Shown here: positions 9,084 to 60,774 of the stretch, in pieces | How positions within the stretch are numbered: position 1 is the stretch's first letter | Layout: each line of letters begins with the position of its first letter | Source of the DNA: Macrostomum lignano | Lineage: Eukaryota | Direction: 5' to 3' | NCBI GenBank assembly: GCA_002269645.1 | Contig: NIVC01001348.1 | Location: 37,663 to 101,662, forward strand | DNA length: 64,000 nucleotides | The notes under the pieces: generated by a model | The model's database searches: none | What the model was told of the DNA's origin: nothing | Seen by the model: the letters and a program-made list of their open reading frames with translations, nothing else | Translations under genes and position numbers: made by a program

Positions 9084-9114
<31 letters not shown>

Positions 9115-24220: not shown

Positions 24221-25029
24221 TGCCTCATCAGATTTTCTATTTCTAGGCCACACCCTAAATCTCTTAAATTCTTTTTTCTCCATCTCTAGACGTCGCTAGA
24301 TCTCATGCTAGGTTTTTAGACTTTTCTCAATACATAAAATATTTACTCTTTAGATTTTCTATAGATGCTGGCTAAATAATTCATTGGCCAACTACCATTC
24401 GAGAATATATTGATTTCAACTAAGTGTATTTTTAAGCCTCTTGGCGTGTGTGGCATCTACAGCAGAGAAGGCGTAAATTTACTTGGGAATTGAGACTCTT
24501 CAACCAATTTTCTCCATTTAGCCAAATAAAATCTCAGAGACACTTCATCGGGCACTTTGAGTGGTGAGAAAATTTTCAGCAAATTACTGCAACTCGACTC
24601 TGAAGGACTGACTAATGTCATTTGTTGGCTGAGGAAATTCACTCATCTAGTCTGGGACAGCGGGTCTGGGCAGCATTAGGTCACACTACTACATATAGAT
24701 GATGTTCGAGAGGCACTTTGCCAAGGCTTAGGGATGTCACTAGCTACAGTATACCTCTAGCTGGCACAAATGGATACACAAATCAGTCAGTCACTGGCCA
24801 GCTTTGGAAATTAGGGATTACGCAACGTTGCAGAATGGATTAGGCAATCTCGGCTAAGAAAGCAGTAACTAAGAGAGAGGGCAAATACTGTTGCTTTTCT
24901 GGTGGAATTTTCTGCAGGAAGATTGGCAGTCTGAGGGAAGGAGCAGCACTAATTGATTTGGCGGCAAACTTCCCGTCAGCACCAGCAGGCTTTAGTTATA
25001 CTGCAGTGCCGGTATTTCTGGATGTTTCA

Positions 25030-26270
25030 GTCAGCTCACTCAGCTCCGCAACCATTAGGATCCGCTCACTCAGCTCCGCAACCATTAGGATCCGCTCACT
25101 CAGCTCACTCAGCTCCGCAACCATTAGGATCCGCTCACTCAGCTCCGCAACCATTAGGATCCGCTCACTCAGCTCCGCAACCATCAGAATCGCCTCACTC
25201 AGCTTCGCAACCATCAGAATCGCCTCACTCAGCTCAACAACCATCAGAATCGCCTCACTCAGCTCAACAACCATCAGAATCGCCTCACTCAGCTCAACAA
25301 CCATCAGAATCGCCTCACTCAGCTCAACAACCATCAGAATCGCCTCACTCAGCTCAACAACCATCAGAATCGCCTCACTCAGCTCAACAACCATCAGAAT
25401 CGCCTCACTCAGCTCAACAACCATCAGAATCGCCTCACTCAGCTCAACAACCATCAGAATCGCCTCACTCAGCTCAACAACCATCAGAATCGCCTCACTC
25501 AGCTCAACAACCATCAGAATCGCCTCACTCAGCTCAACAACCATCAGAATCGCCTCACTCAGCTCAACAACCATCAGAATCGCCTCACTCAGCTCAACAA
25601 CCATCAGAATTGCCTCACTCAGCTCAACAACCATCAGAATTGCCTCACTCAGCTCAACAACCATCAGAATTGCCTCACTCAGCTCAACAACCATCAGAAT
25701 TGCCTCACTCAGCTCCGCAACCATCAGAATCGCCTCACTCAGCTCAACAACCATCAGAATTGCCTCACTCAGCTCCGCAACCATCAGAATCGCCTCACTC
25801 AGCTCAACAACCATCAGAATCGCCTCACTCAGCTCAACAACCATCAGAATCGCCTCACTCAGCTCAACAACCATCAGAATTGCCTCACTCAGCTCAACAA
25901 CCATCAGAATTGCCTCACTCAGCTCCGCAACCATCAGAATCGCCTCACTCAGCTCAACAACCATCAGAATTGCCTCACTCAGCTCCGCAACCATCAGAAT
26001 CGCCTCACTCAGCTCAACAACCATCAGAATCGCCTCACTCAGCTCAACAACCATCAGAATCGCCTCACTCAGCTCAACAACCATCAGAATCGCCTCACTC
26101 AGCTCAACAACCATCAGAATCGCCTCACTCAGCTCAACAACCATCAGAATCGCCTCACTCAGCTCAACAACCATCAGAATCGCCTCACTCAGCTCAACAA
26201 CCATTAGGACCCACTCACTCAGCTTCGCAACCATCAGAATCGCCTCGCTCAGCTCAACAACCATTGGGAC
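25030..26270. repeat. Minisatellite, 30-bp unit AGCTCAACAACCATCAGAATCGCCTCACTC
   Basis: ~1.2 kb array. ORFs in three frames arise because the unit is a multiple of 3. Confidence 0.96.
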
Positions 26271-27339
26271 TTACCCACAATAGAGACGTAAAAACAAAGC
26301 ACTGATAACTTACCGGCTTGAAAAAGTAAAGACGCCACCAGACGCAGAAAGATCTAGTAGACAAGAAGTCACAATGTTAGAATTGTAAACTGTCGAAGCA
26401 GATTATTTTTAATAATCTTTTTCCTTCCCGCAGTTCTTACTCTGCTTTCTGGACGCTTAAAGGTGTAGCCTCTATAGAGAGAGAGATAGGGTGGAGAAGG
26501 ACTGAATAGGTGAGAGTGGCTGTTGGGCGGAAAGGCAGCTTGAGCGAAGCAAAACTCAAATCTATGAGCCCCTTTAGTGTGTGTGTGTGTGGGCCCGCCT
26601 CTATTCAGGTCTGGATTGTTCTGCCGTCGGCAAGTCCACAGAGAGAATGACAGAATTAGCTACTATTTATGAACTACTGCCAGAGTGTTCAGCAGCTTAC
26701 GGGTGCGCTGAGTGAGAGTTTTACAGAATTTGTCAACGCTTTTCTGGTTAGCGAGCGCTTCTTCTCTTCAACCTCCCCCCCCCCCCGCTCTTATGATTGG
26801 ACTCGGCCTGGAAGGCCAACCAAGCGAACCAGCAGAGTCCCGGTTCATGGGCTATTATAGACTGAATCTGGACAACTTTTGGCCACGGAAGGTGGACTTT
26901 CTGGTAGATCTAGCCCCCCTCCCCTCGATGGTGCCCCCCTGATGGAGCCCTTGAGCTTGCTTCATCACAACTTGCACACAATCTAGCGTTGTAAATCTGG
27001 AAAATTTCATATACAGGCACTTTATAGAAATAGCTCCAGTCCAGACTTATAAGTTTGAGTAGTCCCTGGCTGTCTGTCAGCCACACCGACAGCATTGAAT
27101 GTAAAAACAAATTCTTTTAGTTGTCTCTTGTCTCTTCTCTATTCATTCAAACTAATTTATCATCTAAAAGTAGCTTTCACTTCTGCGGGGCCTCAAAGGC
27201 TCAGACACAATGGCAGGTAAGAAGACCTTGTAGTCAGTTTCCGGATAAATTTTTGCGAGAATGTGCAACTAAAGTCATTTATATTGTTTGAGAATCCAGC
27301 CAGTTTGCCTTTGACGACCTACCGGGTGTTTCGTGAGAA

Positions 27340-28395: not shown

Positions 28396-30019
28396 AATTT
28401 TCATGAAACAGCTGGTTAAAAACAAACAGGTACAAAGTAACAACAAATAACGGCATTAAGATTGCTAGTGTCTTGATCAAAATGAAATCGTGCAAAGGAA
28501 ATTAATATAAGCTTATAGTTTTGTATATATTTATTTGAAAAAAAAGTTTTTTTGGATAAACAAATAACAGAAAAAAACAGAAGTAAAAAAGCAGATGAAT
28601 CAACGCACTGAAGCAATCGCATAAGAAATTAACAATCAACAGTTGTAGCGCGAGTGAATGGGACAAGTTTTGAGGGAATTAAAGGGGATAACCGTATCCA
28701 AAATACCGGCTGAGTTAAAGTTTGCAAACAAAGTTAATCGAATTCGCCAAACAAACACAAAATTTGGTTTGAATTTGCGCTGTAAAGTAATGCAGTCTCA
28801 GTTCTATCTCTGGGATAAGAAAAGGAAAAGTAAAGAACTCAAATGATCAATCTACGAATCAGTCAGCCTCTTTAAGAAAACTGTTAATAAACTATATAAT
28901 ATTTGCTACAATCGTAGTCGAAGAAAAACAAAGAAGAAGCAAAGCAACAAGTGCCAGAAATAAGAAGTACAGAGAAAACACATAGCCAGATTATAATTAA
29001 TTCAAATTTAAACAATAAACAAGTTAGTTATAACTTTTACTGTGAAACATAAATACATATTGCTAGAAGGAATATTAAAAAAGAAATGAAAAAATACTAA
29101 AAGACAAGTATTAAAAAGGACATATTGTACTCTAATAGCTGACAATGGATGCCACATCACGTCAGTTAATAAGAATGACAGTTTCCAATCGAAATACGCA
29201 GATCAAATATTATCTCTTGCCAAGGTAGAAAAATCTGCTTTCTAAAGCTAATAATTTAGTATCGGTAATGCGATAATTATTGAGGAATAATTATCTAATC
29301 AAGCGCCTTTGAGTCGAAAAAAATTTGCAGTATAAAAAACAAGCATAATAAAAATAACAAAAAAGAAAAACTCTATCCCTGCTGCTCCTACTCGGCACCG
29401 CAAAATACTACTAACCGAAGTAATTTAGTAAGTAGTGTACTGCAGGCAAAATATTTGTTTAGCGTTGAATTTATAAAGTTGGCTGTGTTAATACAGTCGA
29501 TGCTAGCTGTTAATAAATAGAGACATGACATTTCAAGTTAACCGAGAAAGAGATTCAAACAAGCAGCTCCGGCAACTGTAACGGGCAATGTCGCTATTGA
29601 AGTTTATCGTACAGCTATTCTGGGAGAACCCGAACGATAAGAGAGGACACGAAACCAAACAAATAGTTGTTGAACCGCGGGTTAATCGATTGCAGAAGTG
29701 ACAATATCAAATAAATGAATCTTATTAGTCAACAAATTAAAAAATTATAGACAAGTAAATGAAATTAATAAATAAACAATATACACACAAAATAAAACAC
29801 GGCAATTAAAATTACACATGCAAAATCTAATCGAGTGTAAAGAAAATGTTGTGATTATATTATGAAAAAAGACGCAACAAAAATAACATTTTATAGGAAT
29901 TTTGAGAATAATTGCGGCCACAAAATGACCGCATTCCGCTTCTGGTAATTGTTGACAGTGCGTTGCTTGGCAATAAATTATCTGTTTTTGATTCGTTTGT
30001 GCAATTGTACTTTTGTAGC

Positions 30020-30720
30020 TCACTGAGTGGAGTGAGGTGGCTGGCGGGGTGGCTGGCGGAGTGAGGTGGCTGGTGGAGTGAGGTGGCTGGCGGAGTGAGG
30101 TGGCTGGTGAAGTGAGGTGGCTGGTGGAGTGAGGTGGCTGGCGGAGTGAGGTGGCTGGTGGAGTGAGGTGGCTGGTGGAGTGAGGTGGCTGGTGGAGTGA
30201 GGTGGCTGGTGGAGTGAGGTGGCTGGCGGAGTGAGGTGGCTGGCGGGGTGGCTGGTGGAGTGAGGTGGCTGGCGGAGTGAGGTGGCTGGTGGAGTGAGGT
30301 GGCTGGTGGAGTGAGGTGGCTGGTGGAGTGAGGTGGCTGGCGGAGTGAGGTGGCTGGCGGGGTGGCTGGCGGAGTGAGGTGGCTGGCGGGGTGGCTGGCG
30401 GAGTGAGGTGGCTGGTGGAGTGAGGTGGCTGGTGGAGTGAGGTGGCTGGTGGAGCGAGGTGGCTGGTGGAGTGAGGTGGCTGGTGGAGTGAGGTGGCTGG
30501 CGGGGTGGCTGGTGGAGTGAGGTGGCTGGCGGGGTGGCTGGCGGAGTGAGGTGGCTGGCGGGGTGGCTGGCGGAGTGAGGTGGCTGGTGGAGTGAGATGG
30601 CTGGCGGAGTGAGGTGGCTGGCGGGGTGACTGGTGGAGTGAGGTGGCTGGCGGAGTGAGGTGGCTGGCGGGGTGACTGGTGGAGTGAGGTGGCTGGCGGA
30701 GTGAGGTGGCTGGTGGAATG
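30020..30720. repeat. G-rich minisatellite, 17-bp GGAGTGAGGTGGCTGG(T/C) with 12-bp variant
   Basis: Direct tandem repeat. Confidence 0.95.
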
Positions 30721-31547
30721 ATGTGGCTGGCGGAGTAAAATGGCTGATAGCAGCGATTCCAGTGGGTGGATAAAAGTAACTGCAACCGCATTTTGCAACT
30801 TTTAGCAGAAGCAGAACAATGGATATGGCGGATGGAGATAACAAAGGACTAGACAAAAAAAATCATAAGTATGGCCAGAACTTTGCCTACATTTTTCGAG
30901 TACAAAGCCAGAAATTCATTGAAAAACGGTCGAAAACGAAGCGCAAAAGTGCTAAATCAAAGAGTTAGGCGGGATAAATCAAAGACAAACTGAAAATATC
31001 GTATAAAAACGCTAGTTAAATATTGTTTATGAAAAATATGAAGTTATATAATACCGAAAGAAGTACACGAGGAACCTCTGGATCAGATATACAAAATGAA
31101 AATCAATTAGCTATAAAGATAAGATATAGCAATTATAAATTTCGTGAGTGTCAGTTGAAGAAAGCTGAAAATCATACAGATTAAAGCATAACAAACAGTT
31201 TTTCACGCGTTAGAAAAATTGATAAACCAAACACAGCTGTACTATAAGAGATCGAGCAGAAAATCAAAGGCTACATGGATAAAAATTATTATTGTCTAAA
31301 TAATCTCTAAGCATTGTATTATAATAAACAAATAGGAGATTGGCAAACCGAACAAAATAAAAAAAGTGAATACCCACGGTAAATTTGCTATTGCTATTGC
31401 ATAAGGGCCGCGAATTCGTTACAATATGCTGAAGAGTTGTCCTTAAAAAGGCCGTTTTTTTTAAATTTATGTCAAATTTATAGTTTTTTCCTCACAGCTA
31501 ATTTTTGCTTTTTACTTGCACTAATTGATTACACCTGCTACAATTTG

Positions 31548-33046: not shown

Positions 33047-33067
33047 CTACTCCTGCTTCTGCTCCTG

Positions 33068-33116
<49 letters not shown>

Positions 33117-35657
33117 TGCTGCTGCGGCTGCGGCAGGGCCGCGGGCAGCGGAGAGCCAGCCAGCTCGAACAGCTGCTGCAGACCGACAGAGCGACCGCCA
33201 GTCACCAGCAGCACAATGTTGGCCGACTGCGGCCTGGCCAGCTGGCCCGGCCCCACGTGTCGGCCATAGACAGCGGCCAGAGCGGCGCCGCAGACCGGCT
33301 CAGTCAGCAGCTGGTGCTGGCAAAGGAAGCTGACGCTGGCCTTGGCCGCCTCATCCTGGCTGCAGGTCACCGAGTGCAACGGCTGCTCGCGGGCCGCGTC
33401 CAGCGCCCGCTGGCACGGCCGGCCGACTCCGCCGCCGCCGCCACCATCGAGGCAGCCGCCGTTGGTCGTTCGCAGCTCGGCGGCGATCACCGGCGTGGTG
33501 ACCCAGCCGTAGCGCCACAGGCCGGACACGACGCCGGACAGTAGGCCGCCGCCGGACACAGGCAAAACGATAGCGTCGGGCTGTTCGCCGTTCAACGCCT
33601 CGGCGAGTTCGTCAACCAGGCCGCTGTAGCCCGTCCAGACGTCCTCGCTGTCGAACGGGTGCAGCAGGCAGACGGAGCGGCCCAGCTGGCCGGCCAGCAG
33701 CTCCGCTTGGCTGTGCGCCTCGGGCCAGTCGGCGCCGTGCAGCAACACCTGGGCGCCTTCGTCGGCGATGCGAGCGCGAGCCTCTTGGGCTACGGCGGCA
33801 TCGTTGGCATTGGACGCGGCTGATTCGGGCAGCACGACAGTGCACTGCAGGCCGAGACGGGCAGCCGAGTAGGCGCAGGCCAAGCCGGAGTTGCCGGCGC
33901 AGCTGCTGCTGGTCACCACCTATTTATTTATTGATTGAAAGTAAGTTTAAAAAATACAGATAATGTCCTGACTAACTACTGAAGAAACGCATGTTGAGTA
34001 GCATTAAGATATCGTGTTTCCTAGAAATTCCTACAACTGTGACTAAAATTTGTTGCAATAGTTTACAGTTAAAGCGCCATTCAGCTGAAAAGATACATCT
34101 GATTTGCGAAATTTATAATTTTCTTTGCTTTTTATCCTTCACGTCTGAATTTTGGATACTATTGTATGTGTTGTGATAAGTTTTTGCACCCCGTTGCAGT
34201 CTGCTATCTGGAACAAGCCATTTGCTTTTGACCATACAGGCAAAGCATTTTAAACCATCAGCCTGATTATAGTTCTGCCATATTGATGCAATAATGTTCT
34301 GCCGTCATGATTTTTAAAGGTGAAAGCTTGCAGTCTGCCTGAGGATTAAGAGGTTGGGATTCCCTGAAAGTTAGGAGGTATTAAATGACTACCTGAAGGT
34401 TAGGAGGTGCTAAATGACTACCTGAAGGTTGGGGGGTGTTAAATGACTACCTGAAGGTTGGGAGGTGTTAAAGGACTACCTGAAGGTTGGGAGGTGTTAA
34501 AGGACTACCTGAAGGTTGAGAGGTGTTAAATGACTATCTGCAGGTTGGGAGGTGTTAAATGACTTCCTGAAGGTTGGGAGGTGTTAAAGGACTACCTGAA
34601 GGTTGGGAGGTGTTAAAGGACTACCTGAAGGTTGAGAGGTGTTAAATGACTATCTGCAGGTTGGGAGGTGTTAAATGACTACCTGAAGGTTGGGAGGTGT
34701 TAAAGGACTACCTGAAGGTTGGGAGGTGTTAAATGACTACCTGAAGGTTGGGAGGTGTTAAAGGACTACCTGAAGGTTGGGAGGTGTTAAAGGACTACCT
34801 GAAGGTTGAGAGGTGTTAAATGACTATCTGCAGGTTGGGAGGTGTTAAATGACTTCCTGAAGGTTGGGAGGTGCTAAATGACTACCTGAAGGTTGGGAGG
34901 TGTTAAATGACTACCTGAAGGTTGGGAGGTGTTAAATGACTACCTGAAGGTTGGGAGGTATTTAACGATTACCTGAGGATTGAGAGTAAAATAGCGCCAT
35001 AAACTCACGTGAGTGAAGCCCCGCTCAGCGGCCCGCCGCACGGCGTGAGCCATGCCGCGCAGGCACACGGACCCAGTTGGCTGGCAATTCTCCAGTTTGA
35101 GCCAAACGCGGCAGCCTTTGATGCCCATAGCTCTGGCCAGTGGCCGACTTTCAATCAGCGGAGTCCGCACGTGCAGCGGCAGCGGCGCCGGGACGCCAGC
35201 CGATGCGGCGGCCGCGGTGGCCAAGTCCGGGCACAGCAGGCCCAGCTGCGACAGAGCAGTCAGGGCGTCGTGCGGCGGCGAGTCCAAACTCGAGCCGTTG
35301 CTAGACAGCGAGACGTCAAGGTCGGAGGTGATCTCCTTGTGCCCGGCCAGTCTGTGCCCGCCATTGCCGCCGCCGCCGCTACCGCCGCCGCCACCACCGA
35401 TGCCGTTGCTAGTGAGAGTGCGGAAAGCGTTCTGCGTGCCCAGAGCGTTGAAAATGAGCAGGCTGTCAACCATTTCCTCTATGCCAGCCTGCGTGCCGCC
35501 GAAGCCGAAGCTGCCGCTGCCGCCGCCCCAGTTGGACTGTCGGAGTCCAGCAGGCGGCTGAGACCACCGAATCTGCGGCGCGATTGGGTTTGAAGATTTG
35601 AGATGAGATGAGCGATCTGGATCTGTCAGCGGCGCTCTGGCCTGCTGTACTTTTGCA
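33047..35657 (-). CDS. Serine dehydratase/threonine deaminase (SDS/SDSL, PLP fold II)-like domain lacking the PLP lysine; probably the 3' exons of the RRM gene; poly-Gln tail
   Basis: Exons 35657-35009 and 33919-33047. Motifs LHVRTPLIES, VWLKLENCQPTGSVCLRG, SSCAGNSGLACAYSA, HPFD..VWTGY, IVLPVSGGGLL, LTEPVCGAALAAVYG, VLLVTGG. Confidence 0.88.
34360..34975. repeat. Intronic minisatellite, 29-bp unit; sense strand GTAGTCATTTAACACCTCCCAACCTTCAG
   Basis: Direct tandem repeat, ~20 copies by length. Confidence 0.95.
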
Positions 35658-35719
35658 CTGGGTTGGGGTGCCATAGAAATAAACTTAACGATTACGTATG
35701 CGCCTCTCAGCCTCGGTCT

Positions 35720-36830
35720 TTTTGTCTGTCTGTCTTAGTGTCTGCTTGTCTGTTTTTTTAGTGTCTGTCCGTCTGTCTTAGTGTCTGCTTGTCTGTTTTT
35801 TTAGTGTCTGTCCGTCTGTCTTAGTGTCTGCTTGTCTGTTTTTTTAGTGTCTGTCCGTCTGTCTTAGTGTCTGCTTGTCTGTTTTTTTAGTGTCTGTCCG
35901 TCTGTCTTAGTGTCTGCTTGTCTGTTTTTTTAGTGTCTGTCCGTCTGTCTTAGTGTCTGCTTGTCTGTTTTTTTAGTGTCTGTCCGTCTGTTTTAGTGTC
36001 TGCTTGTCTGTTTTTTTAGTGTCTGTCCGTCTGTCTTAGTGTCTGTTTGTCTGTTTTTTAGTGTCTCTCCGTCTGTCTTAGTGTCTGCTTGTCTGTTTTT
36101 TAGTGTCTGTCCTTCTGTCTTAGTGTCTGCTTGTCTGTTTTTTTTAGTGTCTGCCCGTCTGTCTTAGTGTCTGCTTGTCTGTTTTTTTTGTGTCTGCCCG
36201 TCTGTCTTAGTGTCTGCTTGTCTGTTTTTTTTTGTGTCTGCCCGTCTGTCTTAGTGTCTGCTTGTCTGTTTTTTTAGTGTCTGCCCGTCTGTCTTAGTGT
36301 CTGCTTGTCTGTTTTTTTAGTGTCTGCCCGTCTGTCTTAGTGTCTGCTTGTCTGTTTTTTAGTGTCTGTCCGTCTGTCTTAGTGTCTGTTTTAGTGTCTG
36401 ATTAGTGCCTGTCTTAAAGTCTGTCTGTCTGGCAGTTTTAGTGTCTGTCTGTCTGCCTTAGTGTCTGTCTGTCTGCCTTAGTGTCTGTCTGTCTGCTTTA
36501 GTGTCTGTCTGTCTGCTTTAGTGTCTGTCTGTCTGATTTAGTGTCTGTCTGTCTGCTTTAGTGTCTGTCTGTCTGCTTTAGTGTCTGTCTGTCTGATTTA
36601 GTGTCTGTCTGTCTGCTTTAGTGTCTGTCTGTCTGCTTTAGTGTCTGTCTGTCTGCTTTAGTGTGTCTGTCTGCTTTAGTGTCTGTCTGTCTGTCTGATT
36701 TAGTGTCTGTCTGTCTGCTTTAGTGTCTGTCTGTCTGCTTTAGTGTCTGTCTGTCTGATTTAGTGTCTGTCTGTCTGCTTTAGTGTCTGTCTCTGTCTGT
36801 GTTAGTGTCTGTCCTAGTGCCTGTTTTTAG
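35720..36830. repeat. Intronic minisatellites, ~43-bp and ~24-bp TAGTGTCTGTC-based units
   Basis: Direct tandem repeats. Confidence 0.93.
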
Positions 36831-37570
36831 TATTTGTCTGTCTTATTTGGCCTGTCTTCTGTCGTCTTAATTTCTGCCTGAATCTGGCTTAATGTTTCTT
36901 CAGTATATTCATATCTGTTTTTTATGTCTTACTAGTAGTGACTTAGTGACCGAATGTCTGCCTGTCTTAATATCGTGTCCATCCGTCTGTCCTTCTGTCC
37001 GTATTCATGCCAGTTTATTTTTACACATCTATATATAGATAGCTCGTATCCCAAAGATCGAAGCAACCACGCTTTGCATTTTGGCCCGCTAGTCGGAAAT
37101 GATCGGAAATCGATAACATCGATAATTTTACACAGGTAATCTCAAGCAGAAGTCTTTTTGCACAGCATTCCTCGCCTAAATTTCTGTTTAAGAAGCTGTC
37201 TCAACACTAAGCTCAGACTGTCCTACGTGTGTCGCCCCTAATATCAATGCTCGAGACTTAAGGGCCTTAGGCTCGATTCTTAGCGTAGCATACCAGCTGT
37301 AAAGCAAGCCAATGCTAGAAATGTACAATTCCCCCGACAACAAGCCAAGTTAAATTAAACATCAGCCTGTCTGTAACATAAAGCGTATTTCACAAATATA
37401 AATTACAGAACCAGCTACACCAAGGTGAAGGTTTCCAAATTCGATGCTAATCTCTGCCGAATTTCCGTCGGCTAAAGCCGATCCTTTACCCACCTGTCTG
37501 GCCAAGCCGCAGTGCGGGTCAAGGGGCGAACAAACAAGTTGAACAACACGAAGCTATGAAGAGTTATTTT

Positions 37571-37571
<1 letters not shown>

Positions 37572-37652
<81 letters not shown>
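37572..37652. repeat. (CT)n/(GA)n microsatellite
   Basis: Direct sequence. Confidence 0.98.
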
Positions 37653-37654
<2 letters not shown>

Positions 37655-38054
37655 ACAGTAAGCTACGCCGCACAAGATCGCATTGCACAATGCATAATAA
37701 AATTTGTAAAAGCAAAGATTTCGCTTCGTTATTATTAGTTGTAAAACTGAATTGCTGCTGCTGTAGCCTAAGAGAGAGTGGGAGAGAGGGGGGCAGGGGT
37801 AGGTGGCCATTGTCAGATAGGGAGCTTACACACTTGCAGGGTACTGCACCTGTGCACCTTAATTTCTGTGCTAGTGAGGGCAACTATAGAAGAGCCGTGT
37901 TTCAATGTAGTAACACTGTTAAAAAGTGACCATTTTTATTACCTTTATCTCTGCCCACTTCATTCTTAATTCCTAGTCGATTTTTTAATACTCCTTTGAA
38001 GAACACCGATGCGCTGTAAAATTCTTTGGCATTTTGACATATAGAGTCTTCGAG

Positions 38055-38680
38055 GGGCACCAGTCCTCTCCCAGCTCTATTAGATCAGACACCAGTCCTC
38101 TCCCAGCTCTATTAGATCAGACACCAGTCCTCTGCCAGCTCTATTAGATCAGACACCAGGCCTCTCCCAGCTCTATTAGATCAGACACCAGTCCTCTCCC
38201 AGCTCTATTAGATCAGACACCAGTCCTCTCCCAGCTCTATTAGATCAGACACCAGTCCTCTCCCAGCTCTATTAGATCAGACACCAGGCCTCTCCCAGCT
38301 CTGACACCAGGCCTCTCCCAGCTCTGTTAGATCAGACACCAGTCCTCTCCCAGCTCTATTAGATCAGACACCAGTCCTCTCCCAGCTCTATTAGATCAGA
38401 CACCAGGCCTCTCCCAGCTCTGTTAGATCAGACACCAGTCCTCTCCCAGCTCTGTTAGATCAGACACCAGGCCTCTCCCAGCTCTGTTAGATCAGACACC
38501 AGTCCTCTCCCAGCTCTCTTAGATCAGACACCAGTCCTCTCCCAGCTCTATTAGATCAGACACCAGGCCTCTCCCAGCTCTGTTAGATCAGACACCAGTC
38601 CTCTCCCAGCTCTGTTAGATCAGACACCAGTCTTCTCCCAGCTCTGTTAGATCAGACACCAGTCCTCCCCCAGCTCCCCA
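38055..38680. repeat. Intronic minisatellite, 32-bp unit CAGTCCTCTCCCAGCTCTATTAGATCAGACAC
   Basis: Copies at 38061, 38093 etc. Confidence 0.95.
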
Positions 38681-38700
38681 GCTCAAACAGCAGTGCTCAC

Positions 38701-41700
38701 CCGCCGGAGCCGAAGCCAGAGGAGCCGTTGAGGCCCGGGCTGGGGCCGCACAGGCTGGCGCTAAGCCGGCAGCCGGAGGCGCCCCCGGCCGCAGCGGCGC
38801 CCAGACCGGCCGAGTCACGTTGCCGCCCGGTGTCCAGCGGCAGGTTGAACGAAGCGGACAGGCCGGCGTGGCGCGGGCCGGACCGGGCCCTGGCCGAGCC
38901 GTCCTCGGCGAATTTCACCAGCAGCGGGGCCGGCCACTCAGGTCCCTGGATTGGAGCAAAATGCAAACATGTATTACAAACAGTTAGTACACAGCTCCTC
39001 AGTACACAGACCCTCATACATGAACCCTCAGTACACAGCCCCACAGTACACAGACCCTCAGTACACAGACCCTCAGTACACAGACCCTCATACATGAACC
39101 CTCAGTACACAGCCCCACAGTACACAGACCCTCAGTACACAGACCCTCAGTACACAAACCCTCAGTACACAGACACTCAGTACACAGCCCCACAGTACAC
39201 AGACCCTCAGTACACAGACCCTCAGTACACAGACCCTCAGTACACAGACCCTCAGTACACAGACACTCAGTACACAGACCATCAGTACACAGACCCTCAT
39301 ACATGAACCCTCAGTACACAGACCCTCAGTACACAGACCCTCAGTACATAGACCCTCAGTGCACAGACCCTCAGTACACAGACCCTCAGTGCACAGACCC
39401 TCAGTACACAGACCCTCAGTACACAGACCCTCAGTACACAGACCCTCAGTACACAGACCCTCAGTACACAGACCCTCAGTACACAGACCCTCAGTGCACA
39501 GACCCTCAGTGCACAGACCGTCATAAATGAACCCTGTCTTATCTAATTCTACGAAAAAACGTTTCCCAAATCAGTTAGGAAGTGACCTACAAAAGTGTTT
39601 TGATAGTCCTTCAACTATATTAGAATTCAACTTCGAATTGCCCGATCAAGGCCGGCTAGCGGCATGAAGTATTGCATTAGCAAGGCGGGGAATTTTCATT
39701 TTAAGCACCAAAATTGGCTATTACATCTTGTTTTGGACTTCTAAAAAGCATTTTGATCGGAAGTAATTACACAATTGAATACTAATCGAAAGATTTTCTA
39801 AGGTCAGCATCCGATAGCTACGAACTTTATATATAGATATAGACAATTAATTAAAGTACAGAGAAAACTTTTGAATCGAAGAATTTTCTATTCGAAGATA
39901 GGACAAGCTAGATAGCCTAGCTAAGTCTGCAGTAATATTATATAGAGTTTGTGAGTGCCCATTATTTTCCCACACTTTCATCACATGCTGTTACGAGTAT
40001 TGCGCTGCAGTGAGATAAAAAATTGCAATTGTGAATGTCGTCAGTCAAAGCTTAGTATGCAGTACTTGTGCTCGAAGAGCGCACCCCCTGTCGCTGTCGC
40101 TATTCTCAGCACCCCAAGATGAACAATAGAATATAATATAATGTACAAATAAGAAGCAAGCATATTATTACATCACGTAGGCAAAATTATACAGTAGAAT
40201 ATAATGACGGAACTTTACAGATGATTTAAGAACACTGGTTAATAGGAAGGCGAAACGCTTACACTAGTGGGGCTACACTACACCAGCTGATCAGCGTCCA
40301 GGCCAGCAAACAGGAGGAGGGAGGAGACAATTTCAAGCAATAATGACAGCCCCAGTAAAGTACAATGAGTCAGCCTTCTCTCTCTCTCTCTCGCACACAC
40401 AGACACACCGAGAAGACAAGCTGAGTACAGTCGCATTAGTAAGAGGCGGCTATGGTGGGAAGTCTCACAATGGGTCTGCGCACTGATGAGTGAAACCGGC
40501 CTCCCCCCCGTATTTCTCCCGTAGGCATATAATAAAATAGCTAAAAGCTCCAACTGAGAGCAGAGAGCGAGCGAGACAGGGGAGCTCAGGGGGGGGGGTG
40601 AGCAGAGAACCGCGCTCTGAGCCCAGGTGAGAGGCTCATTTCAGGCATTAAAAAAACCATTGAACCAAACACACACAGAGTTGGTGGGGTAGACTAGGCT
40701 TTGGCTACAAAAAACTGCGGTGGTCCGCGACCTACAGTAGGCTATTAATAGTGAAAATGTACGCTGAGATGACGCAAAGCAGCTGAGGTGATGAAGAGTA
40801 CAGGGAGACACTCAATTTTTCTAAGAGCAGAACTTTGTTCTATTTATCACACATTATAAAATCTGACTCACATTTTTTGGGCCAGCATTAGCGTTTTTTC
40901 TTGCTTTAATTAAACAGCAGTTATCAATCATATAATGCACATTTAAGTTGTTCAGATCTATGAGTTAGCAGGTACAGCCGGTTATAAGGCGAGATGGTCA
41001 GATAATACATTGTAAAGCTTATGTGGATAATATGCGGATATAGATACGTACTTTAATCTTTAAAACCTATATTCTTTTTAACGACCACAATTTATCAAGG
41101 CAATGCAGTAACAGCCCGAGATTCGATTGCAAGCCAGCAAACAACGGAAATGGCATGGCAATGGCGTATAGTTAAAGACAAAGTGTACAATAAAGGTCAC
41201 CGTTATGGCGACTAGCTAAAATTGAATGTTAGTGTAAGAGAATCTCTAGTCTGTTTATAAGCAGAATTCAGGCAAGCAAACCACTATTGATATGAGGTGT
41301 GCAGCAAGCCTACCCTCTCAGATGTTCAGATGAGACACAGCTACCATCTCAGATGTTCAGGTGAGACACAGCTACCATCTCAGATGTTCAGGTGAGACAC
41401 AGCTACCATCTCAGATGTTCAGATGAGACACAGCTACCATCTCAGATGTTCAGGTGAGACACAGCTACCATCTCAGATGTTCAGATGAGACACAGCTACC
41501 ATCTCAGATGTTCAGGTGAGACACAGCTACCATCTCAGATGTTCAGGTGAGACACAGCTACCATCTCAGATGTTCAGGTGAGACACAGCTACCATCTCAG
41601 ATGTTCAGGTGAGACACAGCTAGCTACCATCTTAGATGTTCAGGTGAGACACAGCTACCATCTCAGATGTTCAGGTGAGACACAGCTACCATCTCAGATA

Positions 41701-43606
41701 TTCAGGTGAGACACAGCTACCATCTCAGATGTTCAGGTGAGACACAACTACCATCTCAGATGTTCAGGTGAGACACAGCTACCATCTCAGATGTTCAGGT
41801 GAGACACAGCTACCCTCTCAGATGTTCAGGTGAGACACAGCTACCCTCTCAGATGTTCAGGTGAGACACAGCTACCATCTCAGATGTTCAGGTGAGACAC
41901 AGCTACCATCTCAGATGTTCAGGTGAGACACAGCTACCATCTCAGATGTTTAGGTGAGACACAGCTACCATCTCAGATGCTCAGGTGAGACACAGCTACC
42001 ATCTCAGATGTTCAGATGAGACACAGCTACCATCTCAGATGTTCAGGTGAGACACAGCTACCATCTCAGATGTTCAGATGAGACACAGCTACCATCTCAG
42101 ATGTTCAGGTGAGACACAGCTACCATCTCAGATGTTCAGGTGAGACACAGCTACCATCTCAGATGGTCAGGTGAGACACAGCTACCATCTCAGATGTTCA
42201 GGTGAGACACAGCTACCATCTCAGATGTTCAGGTGAGACACAGCTACCATCTCAGATGTTTAGGTGAGACACAGCTACCCTCTCAGATGTTTAGGTGAGA
42301 CACAGCTACCATCTCAGATGTTTAGGTGAGACACAGCTACCATCTCAGATGTTCAGGTGAGACACAGCTACCCTCTCAGATGTTTAGGTGAGACACAGCT
42401 ACCATCTCAGATGTTTAGGTGAGACACAGCTACCCTCTCAGATGTTTAGGTGAGACACAGCTACCATCTCAGATGTTCAGGTGAGACACAGCTACCATCT
42501 CAGATGTTCAGGTGAGATACAGCTACCATCTCAGATGTTCAGGTGAGACACAGCTAGCTACCATCTCAGATGTTCAGGTGAGACACAGCTACCATCTCAG
42601 ATGTTCAGGTGAGACACAGCTACCATCTCAGATGTTCAGGTGAGACACAGCTACCATCTCAGATGTTCAGGTGAGACACAGCTAACCTCTCAGATGTTCA
42701 GGTGAGACACAGCTACCATCTCAGATGTTCAGGTGAGACACAGCTAGCTACCATCTCAGATGTTCAGGTGAGACACAGCTACCATCTCAGATGTTCAGGT
42801 GAGACACAGCTACCCTCTCAGATGTTCAGGTGAGACACAGCAAACCTCTCAGATGTTCAGGCGGGTCCAACGTTACTCTCTTGGCACTCCAGTCTCACCT
42901 GCAGCCCATTGGTGTTCATGATAGCCCGCTCAGCGTTGCTCTTATCGTCGAAGGTGACGAAGCCGACGCCCTTGGACAGACCCGTGTTGGGGTCTGTCAG
43001 CACCCGGATCTGCACCAGCTTGCCAAACCGAGAGAACAGCGCGTTCAAATCGGCCTCAGTCCAGGTGCGCGGAATTCCTGACACGTACAAATTGCCCGGA
43101 TTGCGCAACGGTAGGGCACCACCGCCGCTGCCGCCGCCGCCTCCGCCACTACCTCCGCCGCCGCCTCCGCTGTGCCGCTCAGCCCGCGGCATCTGCGGCA
43201 GAGGCAGCGGCGAGCCGTCGGGGCCAACGAAGCCGGCGCAGGAGCTGCTGCCGGTGGCGGCGTAGGCAACTCGCAGCTTCTTGTTGCCTAGCCGCATGCC
43301 GTGGAACTCGCCGATGGCCTTCTCGGCGTGCTCCGGGAACAGGAAGTCTACGAAGCCGTAGCAGAGCGAGGCGCCAGTCTGCTTGTCGCGCACCACTTTG
43401 TGAGTGCGAATTGGGCCGACCTTTTCGAATAGGGCGCGCAGATCCTCAGTGTCGAATGTCTGTGGCAGATAATTGATGATTAGGTTAGTGCGGCTGCGGT
43501 CTTCGTGGGACTGCTGCTGCTGCTGATGCTCCTGCTGTGGCTGGCCAGCGCCTCTGCCCAGCTGGGCCTCCAGCATGCCACTTGGCGCCGATTCCTGCTG
43601 CAACAT
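38701..43606 (-). CDS. ELAV/Hu/Sex-lethal-family RNA-binding protein, RRM1+RRM2 (no RRM3 found); ends at TGA 38697-38699 if unspliced or continues into the SDS-like exons
   Basis: Exons 43606-42899 and 38945-38701. RRM1 [12 protein letters not shown]...[13 protein letters not shown]...[13 protein letters not shown]2 [11 protein letters not shown]...[13 protein letters not shown]...NGLQ|[13 protein letters not shown]. Start could also be ATG 43576. Confidence 0.9.
38990..39530. repeat. Intronic minisatellite, 15-bp unit CAGTACACAGACCCT
   Basis: Direct tandem repeat. Confidence 0.95.
41310..42860. repeat. Intronic minisatellite, 31-bp unit TCAGATGTTCAGGTGAGACACAGCTACCATC
   Basis: ~50 copies by length, beginning ~35 nt from the exon 1 donor of the RRM gene. 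Confidence 0.97.
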
Positions 43607-50773: not shown

Positions 50774-53700
50774 TTAATCATCAAGCTTCAAAGCTTTCTG
50801 TCTGGCCTGCTTCAGTCGCAGGCGTTCAAACCGGGCATTAGTGTGGGATTTGAACAGCGGATTAGCTTTCAGCCAGGATTCGTAAGCGGAGCGGAACAGC
50901 TGATATTCTTTGGGATCGACGGGGCGGCCACCGCAGGCCGAGCTGACCTCGGCGACGGCCAAGGAGGACGCAGAGGAGGCCGCTGCTGCGGGCAGGCGGT
51001 CGCGGCACCTGGCCAGTTCGGCCTCCAACAGGCGGACAACAGCCGGACTAGGCGGCACATCAAAGCCGGTCATCCGCCTCACCAGCCAGATTCTATAGGC
51101 CAAATCGTAGGGCTGGGCGGCGCTTAGCATAGCGTGAAACACGGCCTGGTCAGGCTGGGCCGCGTCGCGCGCCATGTCCGCCAGGAGGCGCTCGGCGGCC
51201 TCCTTGGAGCGGCAGGCGCCGCCCAGAGCCACGTAGGTGTCCCGGTCCGGCCGCAGGCCATTCGACCGCATCTCGTCCAAAGTGTCCGAGCAGTCCAGCC
51301 GGTTCCGAACCCGATAGCGGAGCAGGGCATTGTACAGGTTGGCCCCGCCGCCGGGAGTCGATGCCCGGTGGAAGCCGCGGCTCCGGCAGAGCCGCATCAG
51401 CGTCCGCTCAGCTTCCGGTATTGGCGGAAGCATCTCCATCAGTTCGAAAGCGATCGCCGGAGTTGGCTCGGCGCCGTCGGCTCGCATTGACTCGAGTAGG
51501 CCAGCTAAGCCGCCAATTAGAGTAAGGCGTTGCCATGGCAACCTGAGCGCATCAGGCGAGTCTGGCAGGCTTGGCAGCGGCTGACGCGGCCGGAGGAGGC
51601 TGAGCGGGCAGCTCAAAGCCAGAGCGGCTGGTGGCTGAGCCGGCAGTGAGAAGTCCAGCTCTGACTGCGGCAGTTCAGCAGCAGACTCAGCTACCGGCTG
51701 CCTCATCACTGTCAGATTCTGTGCGTCCAGCTCGGCCGACCAGCCGTCCTGCAGTCGCTGCATCGCGGCGCCAGCGCCGGAGCCTTTGACGTCGCCAGAT
51801 TGGCCGTCGCCGAGTCGATTGGAGCCGGACCGCATGAAAGCCCGGGCTGGCGGCCCGGCCGCCGCTTCCGCCGCCGCCATGAGGCTCGGCTGACCGATGC
51901 CACAGGCTCGAAGGCACCTGAGATGGGGATTTGGTAGAGTTGCATCTGTGTTGCATCGTCTACCAAAAGCCGAACCAGAAAAAGAAATTGAGTCATATTC
52001 ATTTTTTAAAATCTATCGTTCTGAGAAATTATAGCATTCTTGGCCTCATATGCAGTTAAGCAGACGCTTGCAAACAAACCCTCCCACAACCCATAAAGCG
52101 ACGGTCAATAGCCCATTGGTCCAGTGTGGCGATCTGATGTGCCAGCGGCCCAGGCTCGATTCCAAGTGCAGTCACATTAATTTGCGGCTAAATTGGAATC
52201 TTGGCTTGGCTCTGCTCGTGCAATTAACGGCCGTGAGGGGGCCAACCCCCAAGACACAGTGAAGTGTACATGCCTTAACGATAAAAGAGACCAAATGATT
52301 TCTGCGACAGTTATTGGAAGACCTTTCCAGTTAGAAGTTAGACCAACCTGAGCAGCCGATGATAGTGATGGGCCGACAAGCGGCCGCCGAATGCCAGACG
52401 GAATCGGCGCCAAACAAGCAGTGCGATGGCGCTGCCGGAAGTTTTGTCGGCAAAGGCCGCCAGCAGCAGCGCGTTTAGCATTGTAGGCAGCGGGTGCTGC
52501 TGTCCAACGGATACGGAATCGTCGAATATCTGCAGTTGTTGCACAGTTAGTTTCAGTGAGATTTAAATAGAAATTTGCAAACATCACTTAGAAACATTGT
52601 TTTTCTATTGTGGCCACTAATAATAAGACTTGGGAGAGGAGCGGCATCTACTGAGGGAGCAGGGTAAGGGGAAGGGCCACCGTAGCAACAGCGGCACCCA
52701 CAGCAGGACAGTAAAGGAGCAGCGGCAACCAACGCAGGACACTGAGGGAGCAGCGGCAACCAATGCTGCAGGACACTGAGGGAGCAGCGGCAACCAATGC
52801 TGCAGGACACTGAGGGAGCAGCGGCAACCACTGCAGGACACTGAGGGAGCAGAGGCAACCACTGCAGGACACTAAGGGAGCAGCGGCAACCACTGCAGGA
52901 CACTGAGGGAGCAGCGGCAACCACTGCAGGACACTGAGGGAGCAGCGGCAACCAATGCTGCAGGACACTGAGGGAGCAGAGGTAACCAATGCTGCAGGAC
53001 ACTGAGGGAGCAGCGGCAACCAAAACTGCAGGACACCGAGGGAGCAGCGGCAACCAATGCTGCAGGACACTGAGGGAGCGGCGGCAACCAATGCTGCAGG
53101 ACACTGAGGGAGCGGCGGCAACCAATGCTGCAGGACACTGAGGGAGCAGCGGCAACCAATGCTGCAGGACACTGAGGGAGCGGCGGCAACCAATGCTGCA
53201 GGACACTGAGGGAGCAGAGGCAACCACTGCAGGACACTGGGGGAGCAGCGGCAACCAATGCTGCAGGACACTGAGGGAGCAGAGGCAACCAATGCTGCAG
53301 GACACTGAGGGAGCGGCGGCAACCAATGCTGCAGGACACTGAGGGAGCAGCGGCAACCAATGCTGCAGGACACTGAGGGAGCGGCGGCAACCAATGCTGC
53401 AGGACACTGAGGGAGCAGAGGCAACCACTACAGGACACTGGGGGAGCAGCGGCAACCAATGCTGCAGGACACTGAGGGAGCAGCGGCAACCACTGCAGGA
53501 CACTGGGGGAGCAGCGGCAACCAATGCTGCAGGACACTGAGGGAGCAGAGGCAACCACTGCAGGACACTGAGGGAGCAGCGGCAACCACTGCAGGACACT
53601 GAGGGAGCAGCGGCAACCACTGCTGCAGGAAACTGAGGGAGCAGAGGCAACCACTGCAGGACACTGAGGGAGCAGCGGCAACCAATGCTGCAGGACACTG

Positions 53701-55553
53701 AGGGAGCAGAGGCAACCAATGCTGCAGGACACTGAGGGAGCAGCGGCAACCAATGCTGCAGGAAACTGAGGGAGCGGCGGCAACCAATGCTGCAGGACAC
53801 TGAGGGAGCAGCGGCAACCAATGCTGCAGGAAACTGAGGGAGCGGCGGCAACCAATGCTGCAGGACACTGAGGGAGCAGAGGCAACCACTGCAGGACACT
53901 GGGGGAGCAGCGGCAACCAATGCTGCAGGACACTGAGGGAGCAGAGGCAACCACTGCAGGACACTGAGGGAGCAGCGGCAACCAATGCTGCAGGACACTG
54001 AGGGAGCAGAGGCAACCACTGCAGGACACTGAGGGAGCAGCGGCAACCACTGCAGGACACTGAGGGAGCAGCGGCAACCACTGCAGGACACTGGGGGAGC
54101 AGCGGCAACCAATGCTGCAGGAAACTGAGGGAGCAGCGGCAACCAATGCTGCAGGAAACTGAGGGAGCGGCGGCAACCAATGCTGCAGGACACTGGGGGA
54201 GAAGCGGCATCCCATAAAAACAATGAAGTAAGACAAACCTTAAGCGCCTCCTGCACTAGTCCATTCTTGGCGCAGGCTAGCACAGCAAAATAGTACACGT
54301 ATCTGTGCTGCTCCCCTCCGCCCCCAGCCTGCTTGGAGTCTTCGCAGAGCGCGTGATAATAGCGACAGGCCAGCTCGCCCGCCACCCGGTCCGGAGTGCC
54401 GTCATAGTAAGAGGCCTTAGCCAGAGAGTGCAGATAGTGACAATGGGTCGCATAGTTGGGCTCCACACCGGCTGAGCGACACCTGAATTGAATTATGATT
54501 CCATAATAAATCTTTATTAGTCTGGATTAAACTCTCAAAGTCTCTAAACATTTGCTCGATTCAATCTCGATTGTAACAGCCATTCAGTCAGTTCAGTCAC
54601 CTAGGCTAAGAAGCATCCCAGAATATCAATGGCATCGCCGCAGGTAACACGTACAGGTAAAATAGGAAAGAGGTGACTCCAGACGACTCTAAAATGATGA
54701 GATGTCACGGTAAAAGTCGTCAGAAAGTCACTTAAGAGTCACTTTGAAGCGTTTTATTGTCAGAGATTCTGAAAACGACTCTTGGACGGTAGAGTGGTAT
54801 CTGAGGCAGGACCTTTAAAGCTTATTTAAGTACTGAAATTGTTTTTAATTGCTAGTAAAAAATATTTAAATTTAAAACTAGCGGGTAAAAAGCGCGAGTA
54901 TATCAAAAATTTGCCTCGGCAGCTAATTAGTTATCAAAAACCTTTATTTTTACGAATCATAATCAGGCATCGCACCTATTCATCACCGCCTTAACCTCGT
55001 CGTAGGCGCCAACCGAGGCCAGGTGTCGCATTGTCTGATTCATTATTCGCCTAGTGGGCAGGAATCGATCCTCGCCGATCATGTCTCGATGCAGCAGGCG
55101 CACAATGCCGGCCGTGTCGCCGGCCTCCGCTAGCTTGTCTAGCCGTCGCAGATACCAGCCTTCGTCGTGCTTCCTGCCGACTCGCGCTAGAGGCCGATGA
55201 TCGGGTAGCCGGTCCTCGTCAATAATAACTGTATCGTCTGGCGCCGATTCCGACATAGCGTCGGCGGCCTCTTCTAGGCCGAGCTCGATGTCGATCCGGG
55301 CGGATTCGGGCGGCTCTACTAGGCTGCTGGTGCGGGCCAGGGCGCCGAATTCGAAGCCAGATTTGTCCGTCCGCATCGGCTGCTGTTGCTGTTCAACCCG
55401 ACGCCGATTGGCTTTGTTCCGATTGGCCAGCTGTCCAAATCGAAACGCGCTGCTGGAGTCCTCCATGGTGGCCACGGAGCTGCTGCCAAGCCGGCGACTG
55501 GCCGCAGCCACTGTCCTGGTGGCAGATGATAGGCACAGGCGACAGAGCAGCAT
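50774..55553 (-). CDS. PTCD1: Mitochondrial pentatricopeptide-repeat protein, PTCD1-like
   Basis: In-frame exons 55553-54976, 54482-54239, 52529-52348, 51917-50774. Arg/Ser-rich presequence-like N-terminus. WYLRRLDKLAEAGD..DMIGEDRFLP, ALLVWRRF..HYHRLLRCLRACGIG, and C-terminal PPR repeats (NLYNALLRYR, MRSNGLRPDRDTYVAL). Confidence 0.85.
52098..52287 (+). mobile_element. tRNA-derived SINE (family B), antisense in PTCD1 intron 3
   Basis: Homologous to 46822-47000 and 8510-8700. Confidence 0.75.
52700..54200. repeat. Intronic minisatellite, 34/31-bp unit GGGAGCAGCGGCAACCA(ATG)CTGCAGGACACTGA
   Basis: Fills PTCD1 intron 2. Confidence 0.96.
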
Positions 55554-59987: not shown

Positions 59988-60636
<649 letters not shown>

Positions 60637-60774
60637 GTGAAATATAGGCTCATTTTCATGAAGAAAGATACATCTACGTTTCAATACGTTTAAATTCATC
60701 CGCAAAATATGTAGGCACAACAAAGATCTCAACAAATGTCGATGATATATGTTTTCTGTCTCAACATGATGCCC

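Follow-up and report, generated by a model that had tools for sequence, protein, structure and literature searches.

A conserved flatworm gene family that joins ELAV/Sxl-type tandem RRMs to a serine-dehydratase-like domain, and one copy of it in Macrostomum lignano

A window of 64,000 nucleotides (nt) from contig NIVC01001348.1 of the flatworm Macrostomum lignano (assembly GCA_002269645.1, Mlig_3_7) contains, on the minus strand, a gene in which two RNA recognition motifs (RRMs) of the ELAV/Sxl type are followed by a domain resembling serine dehydratase (SDS). Coordinates are positions in this window unless another locus is named, and the copy of the gene that lies in it is designated L003. 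The gene is probably one copy of a conserved family of single-polypeptide proteins, found so far in flatworms only, and consists of four exons with a cis-splice from 38701|38700 to 35573|35572. A preliminary description of this DNA had proposed a fusion of the two parts without a third RRM (RRM3), joined through an acceptor at 35657, in an architecture not recognized from other animals. The fusion is upheld for the gene family, and the architecture proved to be widespread in flatworms, where it has already been deposited under enzyme names. For the window itself, the fusion is real for the gene, the proposed junction 38701/35657 is probably wrong, and this particular copy may be broken or misassembled.

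In the protein of 824 codons that results from the junction first proposed, Pfam identifies RRM_1 twice (1.9e-37) and PALP (PF00291; 1.6e-52, 179 bits), in the order RRM1, RRM2, Gly/Ser-rich linker, PALP domain and polyglutamine (polyQ). The RRM pair matches HuR (5.8e-44), HuD (7.9e-43), HuC (2.8e-40) and Sxl (9e-33), and its closest relatives outside the flatworms include arthropod “sex-lethal homolog” proteins with ~33-36% identity. Among solved structures, human SDSL/SDS and rat SDS are the top matches of the SDS-like part (1e-44 to 1e-42). RRM3 is absent: tblastn with RRM3 probes over the whole 64 kb matches RRM1 and RRM2 only, and a third RRM is found neither in the AlphaFold2 model of a 779-amino-acid (aa) paralogue nor in any family member examined. 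The SDS-like fold, the polyQ tail and the missing RRM3 of the preliminary description are all borne out by Pfam, tblastn and translation. In the structural model of the paralogue, RRM1 (residues ~30-110), RRM2 (~165-243) and the SDS-like domain (~440-760) are predicted with a local confidence score (pLDDT) of ~90, and the pLDDT is below 50 in both linkers, a Gly-rich one of ~55 aa that separates the RRMs and a second one of ~190 aa. Foldseek aligns the model to human and rat SDS structures (4H27, 1PWH, 2RKB) with template modelling (TM) scores of 0.82-0.83 and also returns the tandem RRMs of HuR, HuD and Sxl.

Orthologues are not always encoded as two genes; single proteins with RRM_1 and PALP are found in 26 other flatworm species, a tally that comprises 22 cluster representatives and the cluster members. 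When the fused protein is used in an exhaustive HMMER search, two flatworm fusions rank above the best single-domain match, namely a 959-aa protein of Dicrocoelium dendriticum (335 bits, with a single alignment that extends from RRM2 across the SDS-like domain) and a Mesocestoides corti protein of 848 aa. The 22 cluster representatives were returned by a profile search at E<=1e-60, and all of them are from flatworms and contain both PF00076 and PF00291. Pfam scans recovered both domains in each of the six parasite proteins checked, including those of Dicrocoelium, Mesocestoides, Trichobilharzia, Hymenolepis and Cichlidogyrus. The fusion is present in trematodes (five Schistosoma species, Heterobilharzia, two Trichobilharzia species, Paragonimus, Opisthorchis, Clonorchis, Echinostoma, Fasciolopsis, Calicophoron and Dicrocoelium), in cestodes (Mesocestoides, two Hymenolepis species, Schistocephalus, Spirometra, three Echinococcus species, Hydatigera and Taenia) and in the monogenean Cichlidogyrus; no non-flatworm protein with the RRM and PALP architecture was found in these searches. 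Along their full length the parasite proteins align colinearly with that of M. lignano, and the RRM1 signature of the family, which includes LRVAYA, is present in the gene of the window, whose RRM1 scores 146 bits with a profile made from parasite orthologues only. In M. corti, the gene for the 848-aa protein occupies only 3,018 nt, and ~700 nt of nearly uninterrupted coding sequence contain both the RRM2 end and the SDS-like start, a compactness that leaves no room for two genes.

Short annotated products occur in several species, an example being an older M. lignano entry of 215 aa, and isoforms that stop short of the SDS-like domain may exist alongside the fusion. In the nemertean Tubulanus polymorphus, a 568-aa protein (XP_074641592.1) combines two N-terminal PDZ domains with an intact SDS domain (GSFKLRG), which is a second, independent SDS fusion in Spiralia.

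The exons, phases and donor of the RRM part are as previously claimed. Exon 1 (43606-42899, 708 nt, phase 0, ending CTGCAG|GTGAGA), delimited by translation and Pfam, begins with the start codon at 43606, the annotated coding sequences (CDSs) of the paralogues being 5'-partial, and encodes RRM1 (from NLIINYLP, ~43486), the Gly-rich inter-RRM linker and most of RRM2 (from ~43093), both domains being recognized as RRM_1. It is followed by intron 1 (42898-38946) and exon 2 (38945-38701, 245 nt), which supplies the final strand of RRM2 (PLLVKFAED) together with the beginning of the disordered linker and ends in phase 2 at the donor GGC GG|GTGAGC. The same donor is used by the GenBank CDS of paralogue L001; the splice donor motif of M. 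lignano is GT[G/A]AG (PMC8629364). If exon 2 is left unspliced, a TGA stop at 38699-38697 (GGG TGA, …GFGSGG-stop) yields an RRM-only product of 318 aa. By the annotated junction, intron 2 spans 38700-35573; on the minus strand it contains AATAAA at 37940 and 37019 and, in this copy only, an in-frame ATG at 35674-35672 that begins a 512-aa SDS-like open reading frame (ORF; MAPQPSAKVQQ…). Exon 3, as defined by the GenBank CDSs of the paralogues (35572-35009), encodes linker sequence (FGGLSRLLDSDSPT…) followed by the N-terminal portion of the SDS-like domain, ends at …ERGFTH|GTGAGT and includes the run GGGG at 35529-35526, which is GGGGG in the paralogues L001 and L002. Intron 3 (35008-33920) precedes exon 4 (33919-33047), which encodes the remainder of the SDS-like domain and the polyQ tract (~33133-33050) and ends with a TAG stop at 33049-33047.

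The two acceptors under consideration, AG 35659-35658 and the annotated AG 35574-35573, are separated by 85 nt (35657-35573) that are open in the SDS frame of this copy. The AG at 35659-35658 preceding T GCA AAA at 35657 is confirmed in the sequence, and joining 38701 to 35657 and then 35009|33919 gives 824 open codons; this part of the claimed continuous frame stands, whereas with the annotated junction the frame of this copy is shifted. Eight AG dinucleotides that lie between exon 2 and the SDS-like domain yield an open phase-2 fusion frame. Since eight AGs fit, and given the unspliced TGA stop and the in-frame ATG at 35674-35672, the phase match constitutes weak evidence, and judged from this copy alone a two-gene reading would fit equally well as a fusion. 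The paralogues point to the second acceptor: their GenBank CDSs join the same donor to CGCCGCAG|ATTCGG, which corresponds to 35573|35572 of the window, 85 nt downstream of the acceptor first proposed, and produce the junction peptide …GFGSGG|FGGLSRLLDSDSPTGGGGSGSFGFGG…. A CDS rebuilt from L001 DNA with the 35573-equivalent acceptor is identical to the deposited PAA73106.1 over 764 residues, and this match stops where the deposited CDS omits 18 nt of the CAG repeat. The M. lignano annotation was based on StringTie/TACO genome-guided RNA-seq assemblies and a Trinity assembly, with transcript models cut by TBONE at spliced-leader (SL) and poly(A) sites mapped by experiment before ORFs were called with TransDecoder (PMC5730564). 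The paralogue junction is therefore transcript-derived, and no cut between the RRM and SDS halves is recorded at L001 or L002.

The two other copies in the assembly, L001 (NIVC01001036.1) and L002 (NIVC01000487.1), are 94-99% identical, and redundant copies are expected in the DV1 line (PMC5730564). They encode PAA73106.1 (Mlig010810g1, 779 aa) and PAA82197.1 (Mlig003997g4, 781 aa), respectively, both with RRM_1 and PALP, and the SDS-like ORF of the window is 99% identical to M. lignano proteins. A single ORF running through RRM1, RRM2, the linker and PALP is thus present in L001 and L002, whereas in this copy it is intact only with the unsupported acceptor at 35657. Exon 3 differs among the copies at two linked sites only: this copy reads ACT GGGG C and ATT (Ile, 35455-35453), and L001 and L002 read ACT GGGGG C and ATG (Met). 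When the annotated acceptor is used, the shorter G-run of this copy shifts the frame into a TAG at 35481-35479 and leaves an RRM-only product of 348 aa; adding one G to the 4-G run restores a fusion of 796 aa. The in-frame fusion that had been claimed for this copy is consequently broken at the annotated junction, as its G-run has four rather than five residues. At this locus, GenBank lists Mlig003997g1 (PAA69090.1), an SDS-like-only product of 429 aa that starts with MVDSLLIFN, and has no separate CDS for the RRM exons, although these are present upstream in L003. Such a call is expected of a longest-ORF caller applied to the same four-exon transcript with the frameshift (429 vs 348 aa); a transcript with the 35657 acceptor or the ATG at 35674 would have given ~824 or 512 aa instead.

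The window matches NIVC01001348.1 with 100% identity over 2,980 nt of intron rich in tandem repeats, and the DNA of the CAG repeat agrees as well. Because it and L003 belong to one contig, the 4-G run amounts to a single observation. The loss of one base from a run of five Gs is typical of errors in long-read assemblies. The linked ATT/ATG polymorphism marks this as a distinct copy, without proving the indel, and it is about equally likely that the 4-G run is an assembly error or that this is a truly disabled or RRM-only paralogue. In the RRM exons, this copy differs from L001 by 7 synonymous and 0 non-synonymous substitutions and from L002 by 3 and 0, differences that are too few to judge decay of this copy from substitution patterns. 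Translation further indicates that an SL (…TTGCATG) trans-spliced at the 35572 acceptor would place ATG|ATT CGG TGG… in the SDS frame of this copy, giving 479 aa, and that the SL-borne ATG at this acceptor is out of the SDS frame in the 5-G copies. More speculatively, the G-run might switch M. lignano paralogues from a cis-spliced fusion to an SL-ATG-initiated stand-alone SDS-like protein.

The gene structure first proposed, in which 38701 is spliced to 35657 to give an in-frame 824-aa protein and the 4-G run is real but does no harm, appears quite improbable. With this acceptor the frame is open from 43606 to 33047, CCCAACCCAG|T forms a plausible CAG acceptor (motif from PMC8629364) and the 4-G run would leave the gene unbroken; yet the 5-G paralogues would be out of frame with 35657 and have transcript-derived CDSs spliced to 35573, seven other AGs match the phase just as well, and the longest-ORF caller reported 429 aa where this acceptor or the ATG at 35674 should have led it to ~824 or 512. 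The segment 35720-35533 is identical in all three assembly copies, and there is therefore no copy-specific splice signal. The additional 84 nt have a GC content at third codon positions (GC3) of 0.46, compared with 0.78-0.88 in sure exons (binomial P = 0.0003 at p = 0.78 and 0.008 at p = 0.70), and by this measure do not look coding. A pair of genes in an operon-like arrangement is an unlikely alternative to the cis-spliced fusion: the RRM protein would end at 38699-38697 and its transcript be polyadenylated in intron 2, the SDS-like protein would be made from its own mRNA, SL trans-spliced at the 35573 acceptor or starting upstream of the ATG at 35674, and the fused CDSs would represent minor read-through or conjoined transcripts. 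The stop right at the donor, the in-frame ATG at 35674, the AATAAA at 37940, the 479-aa product that an SL-borne ATG would open here, the RRM-only product of an older annotation and the SDS-like-only GenBank call at this locus all fit such an arrangement, and in M. lignano operons and SL trans-splicing are common, intergenic spacers are repeat-inflated and the SL ends in ATG (PMC8629364). On the other hand, TBONE, which cuts at SL and poly(A) sites, did not separate the RRM part from the SDS part at L001 or L002, the fusion is conserved in the 26 other flatworm species, including compact genes without space for a second promoter or outron, the RRM exons present at this locus have no separate CDS, and the SL-ATG and the ATG at 35674 are both out of the SDS frame in the 5-G copies. 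The two-gene or operon model may nevertheless describe minor isoforms.

That the fused models are chimeras of neighbouring genes and that no fusion protein exists in any flatworm is very improbable. Fused gene models are a common error, and most of the orthologue entries are unreviewed, being labelled “unnamed protein product” or automatically named “L-serine ammonia-lyase”; still, the same colinear architecture recurs in 27 species across independent pipelines and assemblies, the family-specific signature of the RRM part accompanies the SDS-like domain, only ~700 nt of near-continuous coding sequence cover the passage from RRM2 to the SDS-like domain in M. corti, and the M. lignano junction is a canonical, phase-matched GT-AG splice. 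A bacterial or contaminant origin of the SDS part was also considered and rejected in view of the spliceosomal intron that splits the domain, its setting in flatworm exons with GC-rich codon usage and the flatworm-wide orthologues. Several observations nonetheless weigh against a cis-spliced, four-exon fusion gene. The orthologue gene models are computational predictions, and Trichobilharzia regenti has shorter products of 582 and 616 aa, the latter named “RRM domain-containing protein”. The junction rests on deposited transcript-derived CDSs of two paralogous loci and not on reads, and the M. lignano protein cluster holds NCBI and UniRef members only, with no RNA-derived contigs among them. 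The window as given has an intact long ORF with the 35657 acceptor or the ATG at 35674 and lacks one with the annotated junction, and if the 4-G state is real, this copy may use something besides the annotated splice. The orthologue profile cannot separate the two acceptors (425.0 vs 424.7 bits), the linker being too divergent to align, and in an older annotation (UniRef A0A1I8I0G4) the RRM protein terminates at the TGA of unspliced exon 2. Finally, the function proposed below is one that we infer.

The active site of the SDS-like domain is altered in M. lignano. The residue at the position of the Schiff-base lysine that binds pyridoxal 5'-phosphate (PLP) is Cys (TGC at 35065-35063; GSVCLRG vs the consensus GSFKxRG), whereas all 25 of the stand-alone homologues aligned have Lys. 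The SSGGNAG loop reads SSSCAGNSG, with a 2-aa insertion, GGGGL reads SGGGL, the ITSxATSLGA segment (14 aa) is missing and there is an insertion of 12 aa; the Gly-rich phosphate loop, like the Cys near the ring nitrogen, is mostly kept. Because the lysine is replaced by Cys, no internal aldimine would form, and the domain looks inactive in M. lignano. The PLP sensing that had been suggested for the protein is likewise weakened in this species, where the lysine is changed to Cys and a segment of the substrate loop is deleted. Among the fusion proteins, 14 of the 15 trematode representatives retain the lysine, and all eight cestode representatives have another residue there (V, T, L or A), as does M. 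lignano (C). From this distribution, we infer that the ancestral fusion had a competent active site and that catalysis became dispensable in several lineages in which the fold and the fusion were retained. The lysine position also differs within the genus Trichobilharzia (GSFEIRG in T. szidati vs GSYKIRG in T. regenti), which reflects either a very recent loss of catalysis or a sequence error.

The RRM pair would bind U/AU-rich RNA, by analogy with Hu and Sxl proteins, and the SDS-like domain of M. lignano, with no internal aldimine and the 14-residue substrate-side segment gone, would most likely act as a non-catalytic module. SDS enzymes are homodimers, and for this reason dimerisation or ligand binding is deemed the most economical role. 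In that likeliest role the domain would stand in for the hinge and RRM3 of ELAV proteins, which multimerise these proteins (PMC2795745). The trematode proteins, whose active-site motifs are intact, may still be RNA-tethered or RNA-regulated enzymes. Taken together, a phylum-wide RNA-binding protein may be envisaged with an SDS fold as its third module, in which the catalytic site is kept in trematodes and lost in cestodes and Macrostomum, and which senses small molecules or dimerises and so couples serine/threonine or PLP status to mRNA regulation, acting in trematodes as an RNA-regulated enzyme; this scheme is tentative, and we regard it as possible rather than probable. If true, it would represent a coupling of RNA biology and metabolism of a kind not described elsewhere, and the “threonine deaminase” annotation in cestodes would be wrong.

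Among known systems, the RRM1-RRM2 tandem of ELAV/Hu proteins (HuR, HuC, HuD; PDB 4ED5, 1FXL, 1FNX) is the best match in both sequence and fold, and the M. lignano protein resembles them further in having a disordered region after RRM2, like the ELAV hinge. The inter-RRM linker of Hu proteins is ~10 aa long, compared with ~55 Gly-rich residues here. Unlike ELAV proteins, the fusion protein has no RRM3, which precludes membership in the ELAV/Hu family, and its C-terminus is enzyme-derived. M. lignano possesses ordinary three-RRM elav genes at other loci, melav1 and melav2 (PMC2795745), the latter encoding a 422-aa protein; the primers published for the testis ELAV4 (Wudarski 2017) and melav2 (Sekii 2009) genes are absent from the window, and these published elav genes were rejected as identities of the present one. 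Sex-lethal (PDB 1B7F, 3SXL, 4QQB) likewise has two RRMs of the same subfamily (9e-33), but carries a Gly-rich tail and no enzyme domain, unlike the fusion protein. SDS and SDSL (1P5J, 4H27, 2RKB and rat 1PWH) share the fold-type II PLP fold; the M. lignano domain differs from them in its fusion to RRMs, its Cys at the Schiff-base position and its altered loops, and it fails to qualify as an SDS enzyme because it lacks the lysine. A stand-alone SDS of M. lignano (PAA55083.1, 337 aa), 45% identical to the fused domain, keeps GSFKIRG.

The closest counterparts are the parasite orthologues, such as A0A0R3U5Y8 of Mesocestoides corti, CDS43193.1 of Echinococcus multilocularis and a “Serine dehydratase-like” protein of Schistosoma japonicum, which have the same colinear architecture and the orthologous RRM1 signature but, unlike the M. 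lignano protein, possess a degenerate RRM2 with an insert, longer C-terminal tails and no polyQ. RNA-binding metabolic enzymes and the RRM-enzyme fusions ALKBH8, TRMT2A and PPIL4 also combine an RNA-binding module and an enzyme fold in one polypeptide. In fusions of the latter type the enzyme acts on RNA or protein; the partner here is instead an amino-acid catabolic PLP enzyme whose catalytic residue has been repeatedly lost.

The architecture is real, conserved and uncharacterised, but already deposited. The family is unnamed, and its database entries are called “L-serine ammonia-lyase” or “serine dehydratase-like”. No paper on an RRM-serine dehydratase fusion in flatworms was found, and the gene identifiers Mlig010810 and Mlig003997 were found neither in full texts of papers nor in the supplements of PMC5816591 and PMC5730564. 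In 2025, a study of threonine metabolism in Echinococcus took the sole such gene, EmuJ_001093200, as a threonine deaminase, “EmTD”, and reported an expression close to zero and a protein undetected in metacestodes (PMC11795093). The quantitative PCR primer for EmTD given in that study (PMC11795093) encodes FLQPTGSVA, a match to CDS43193.1 (EmuJ_001093200), in which RRMs are present and the PLP lysine is replaced by Ala (GSVALRA). On these sequence features the enzyme assignment of EmTD is doubtful, and cestode metabolic reconstructions may accordingly be wrong at this point.

The family pairs the fold of a post-transcriptional regulator with that of an amino-acid catabolic enzyme, an unusual combination, and, with its lysine kept in some lineages and lost in others, it records a change from enzyme to pseudoenzyme. 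It is conserved in parasites including Schistosoma, Echinococcus, Taenia, Clonorchis and Fasciolopsis as well as in the free-living model Macrostomum, for which RNA interference and transgenesis are available.

Each intron of the gene is mostly occupied by a tandem array of its own, with periods of 31, 15, 32, 2 (GA), 20/43 and 29 bp and 20-50 copies each, and the copy numbers vary among the three assembly copies. Intron 1 contains a 31-bp array at 41310-42861 (~50 copies) and a second array with a 15-bp unit at 38986-39523 (~36 copies), intron 2 a 32-bp array at 38058-38676, a GA microsatellite at ~37572-37650 and a 20/43-bp array at 35723-36843, and intron 3 a 29-bp array at 34363-34976 (~21 copies). 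The polyQ tracts of the deposited PAA73106.1 and PAA69090.1 are shorter than the underlying DNA encodes (L001 ~20800; L003 ~12400); the annotation treats part of the CAG repeat like an intron, and the transcript of one allele was probably mapped onto the other copies. The upstream neighbour on the same strand (~50774-55553; L001 1235-5260, L002 1337-5266) is a gene of 714 aa with faint PPR_2/PPR_3 matches, one intron or exon of which contains a long repeat readable as a Cys/Ser/Leu-rich ORF (52553-54466). The long ORFs at 8722-10626, 24953-26305, 29745-30856 and 59909-60693 are translations of tandem repeats with a period of ~30-50 bp and not genes, and such pseudo-ORFs make up most of the ORF list of the window.

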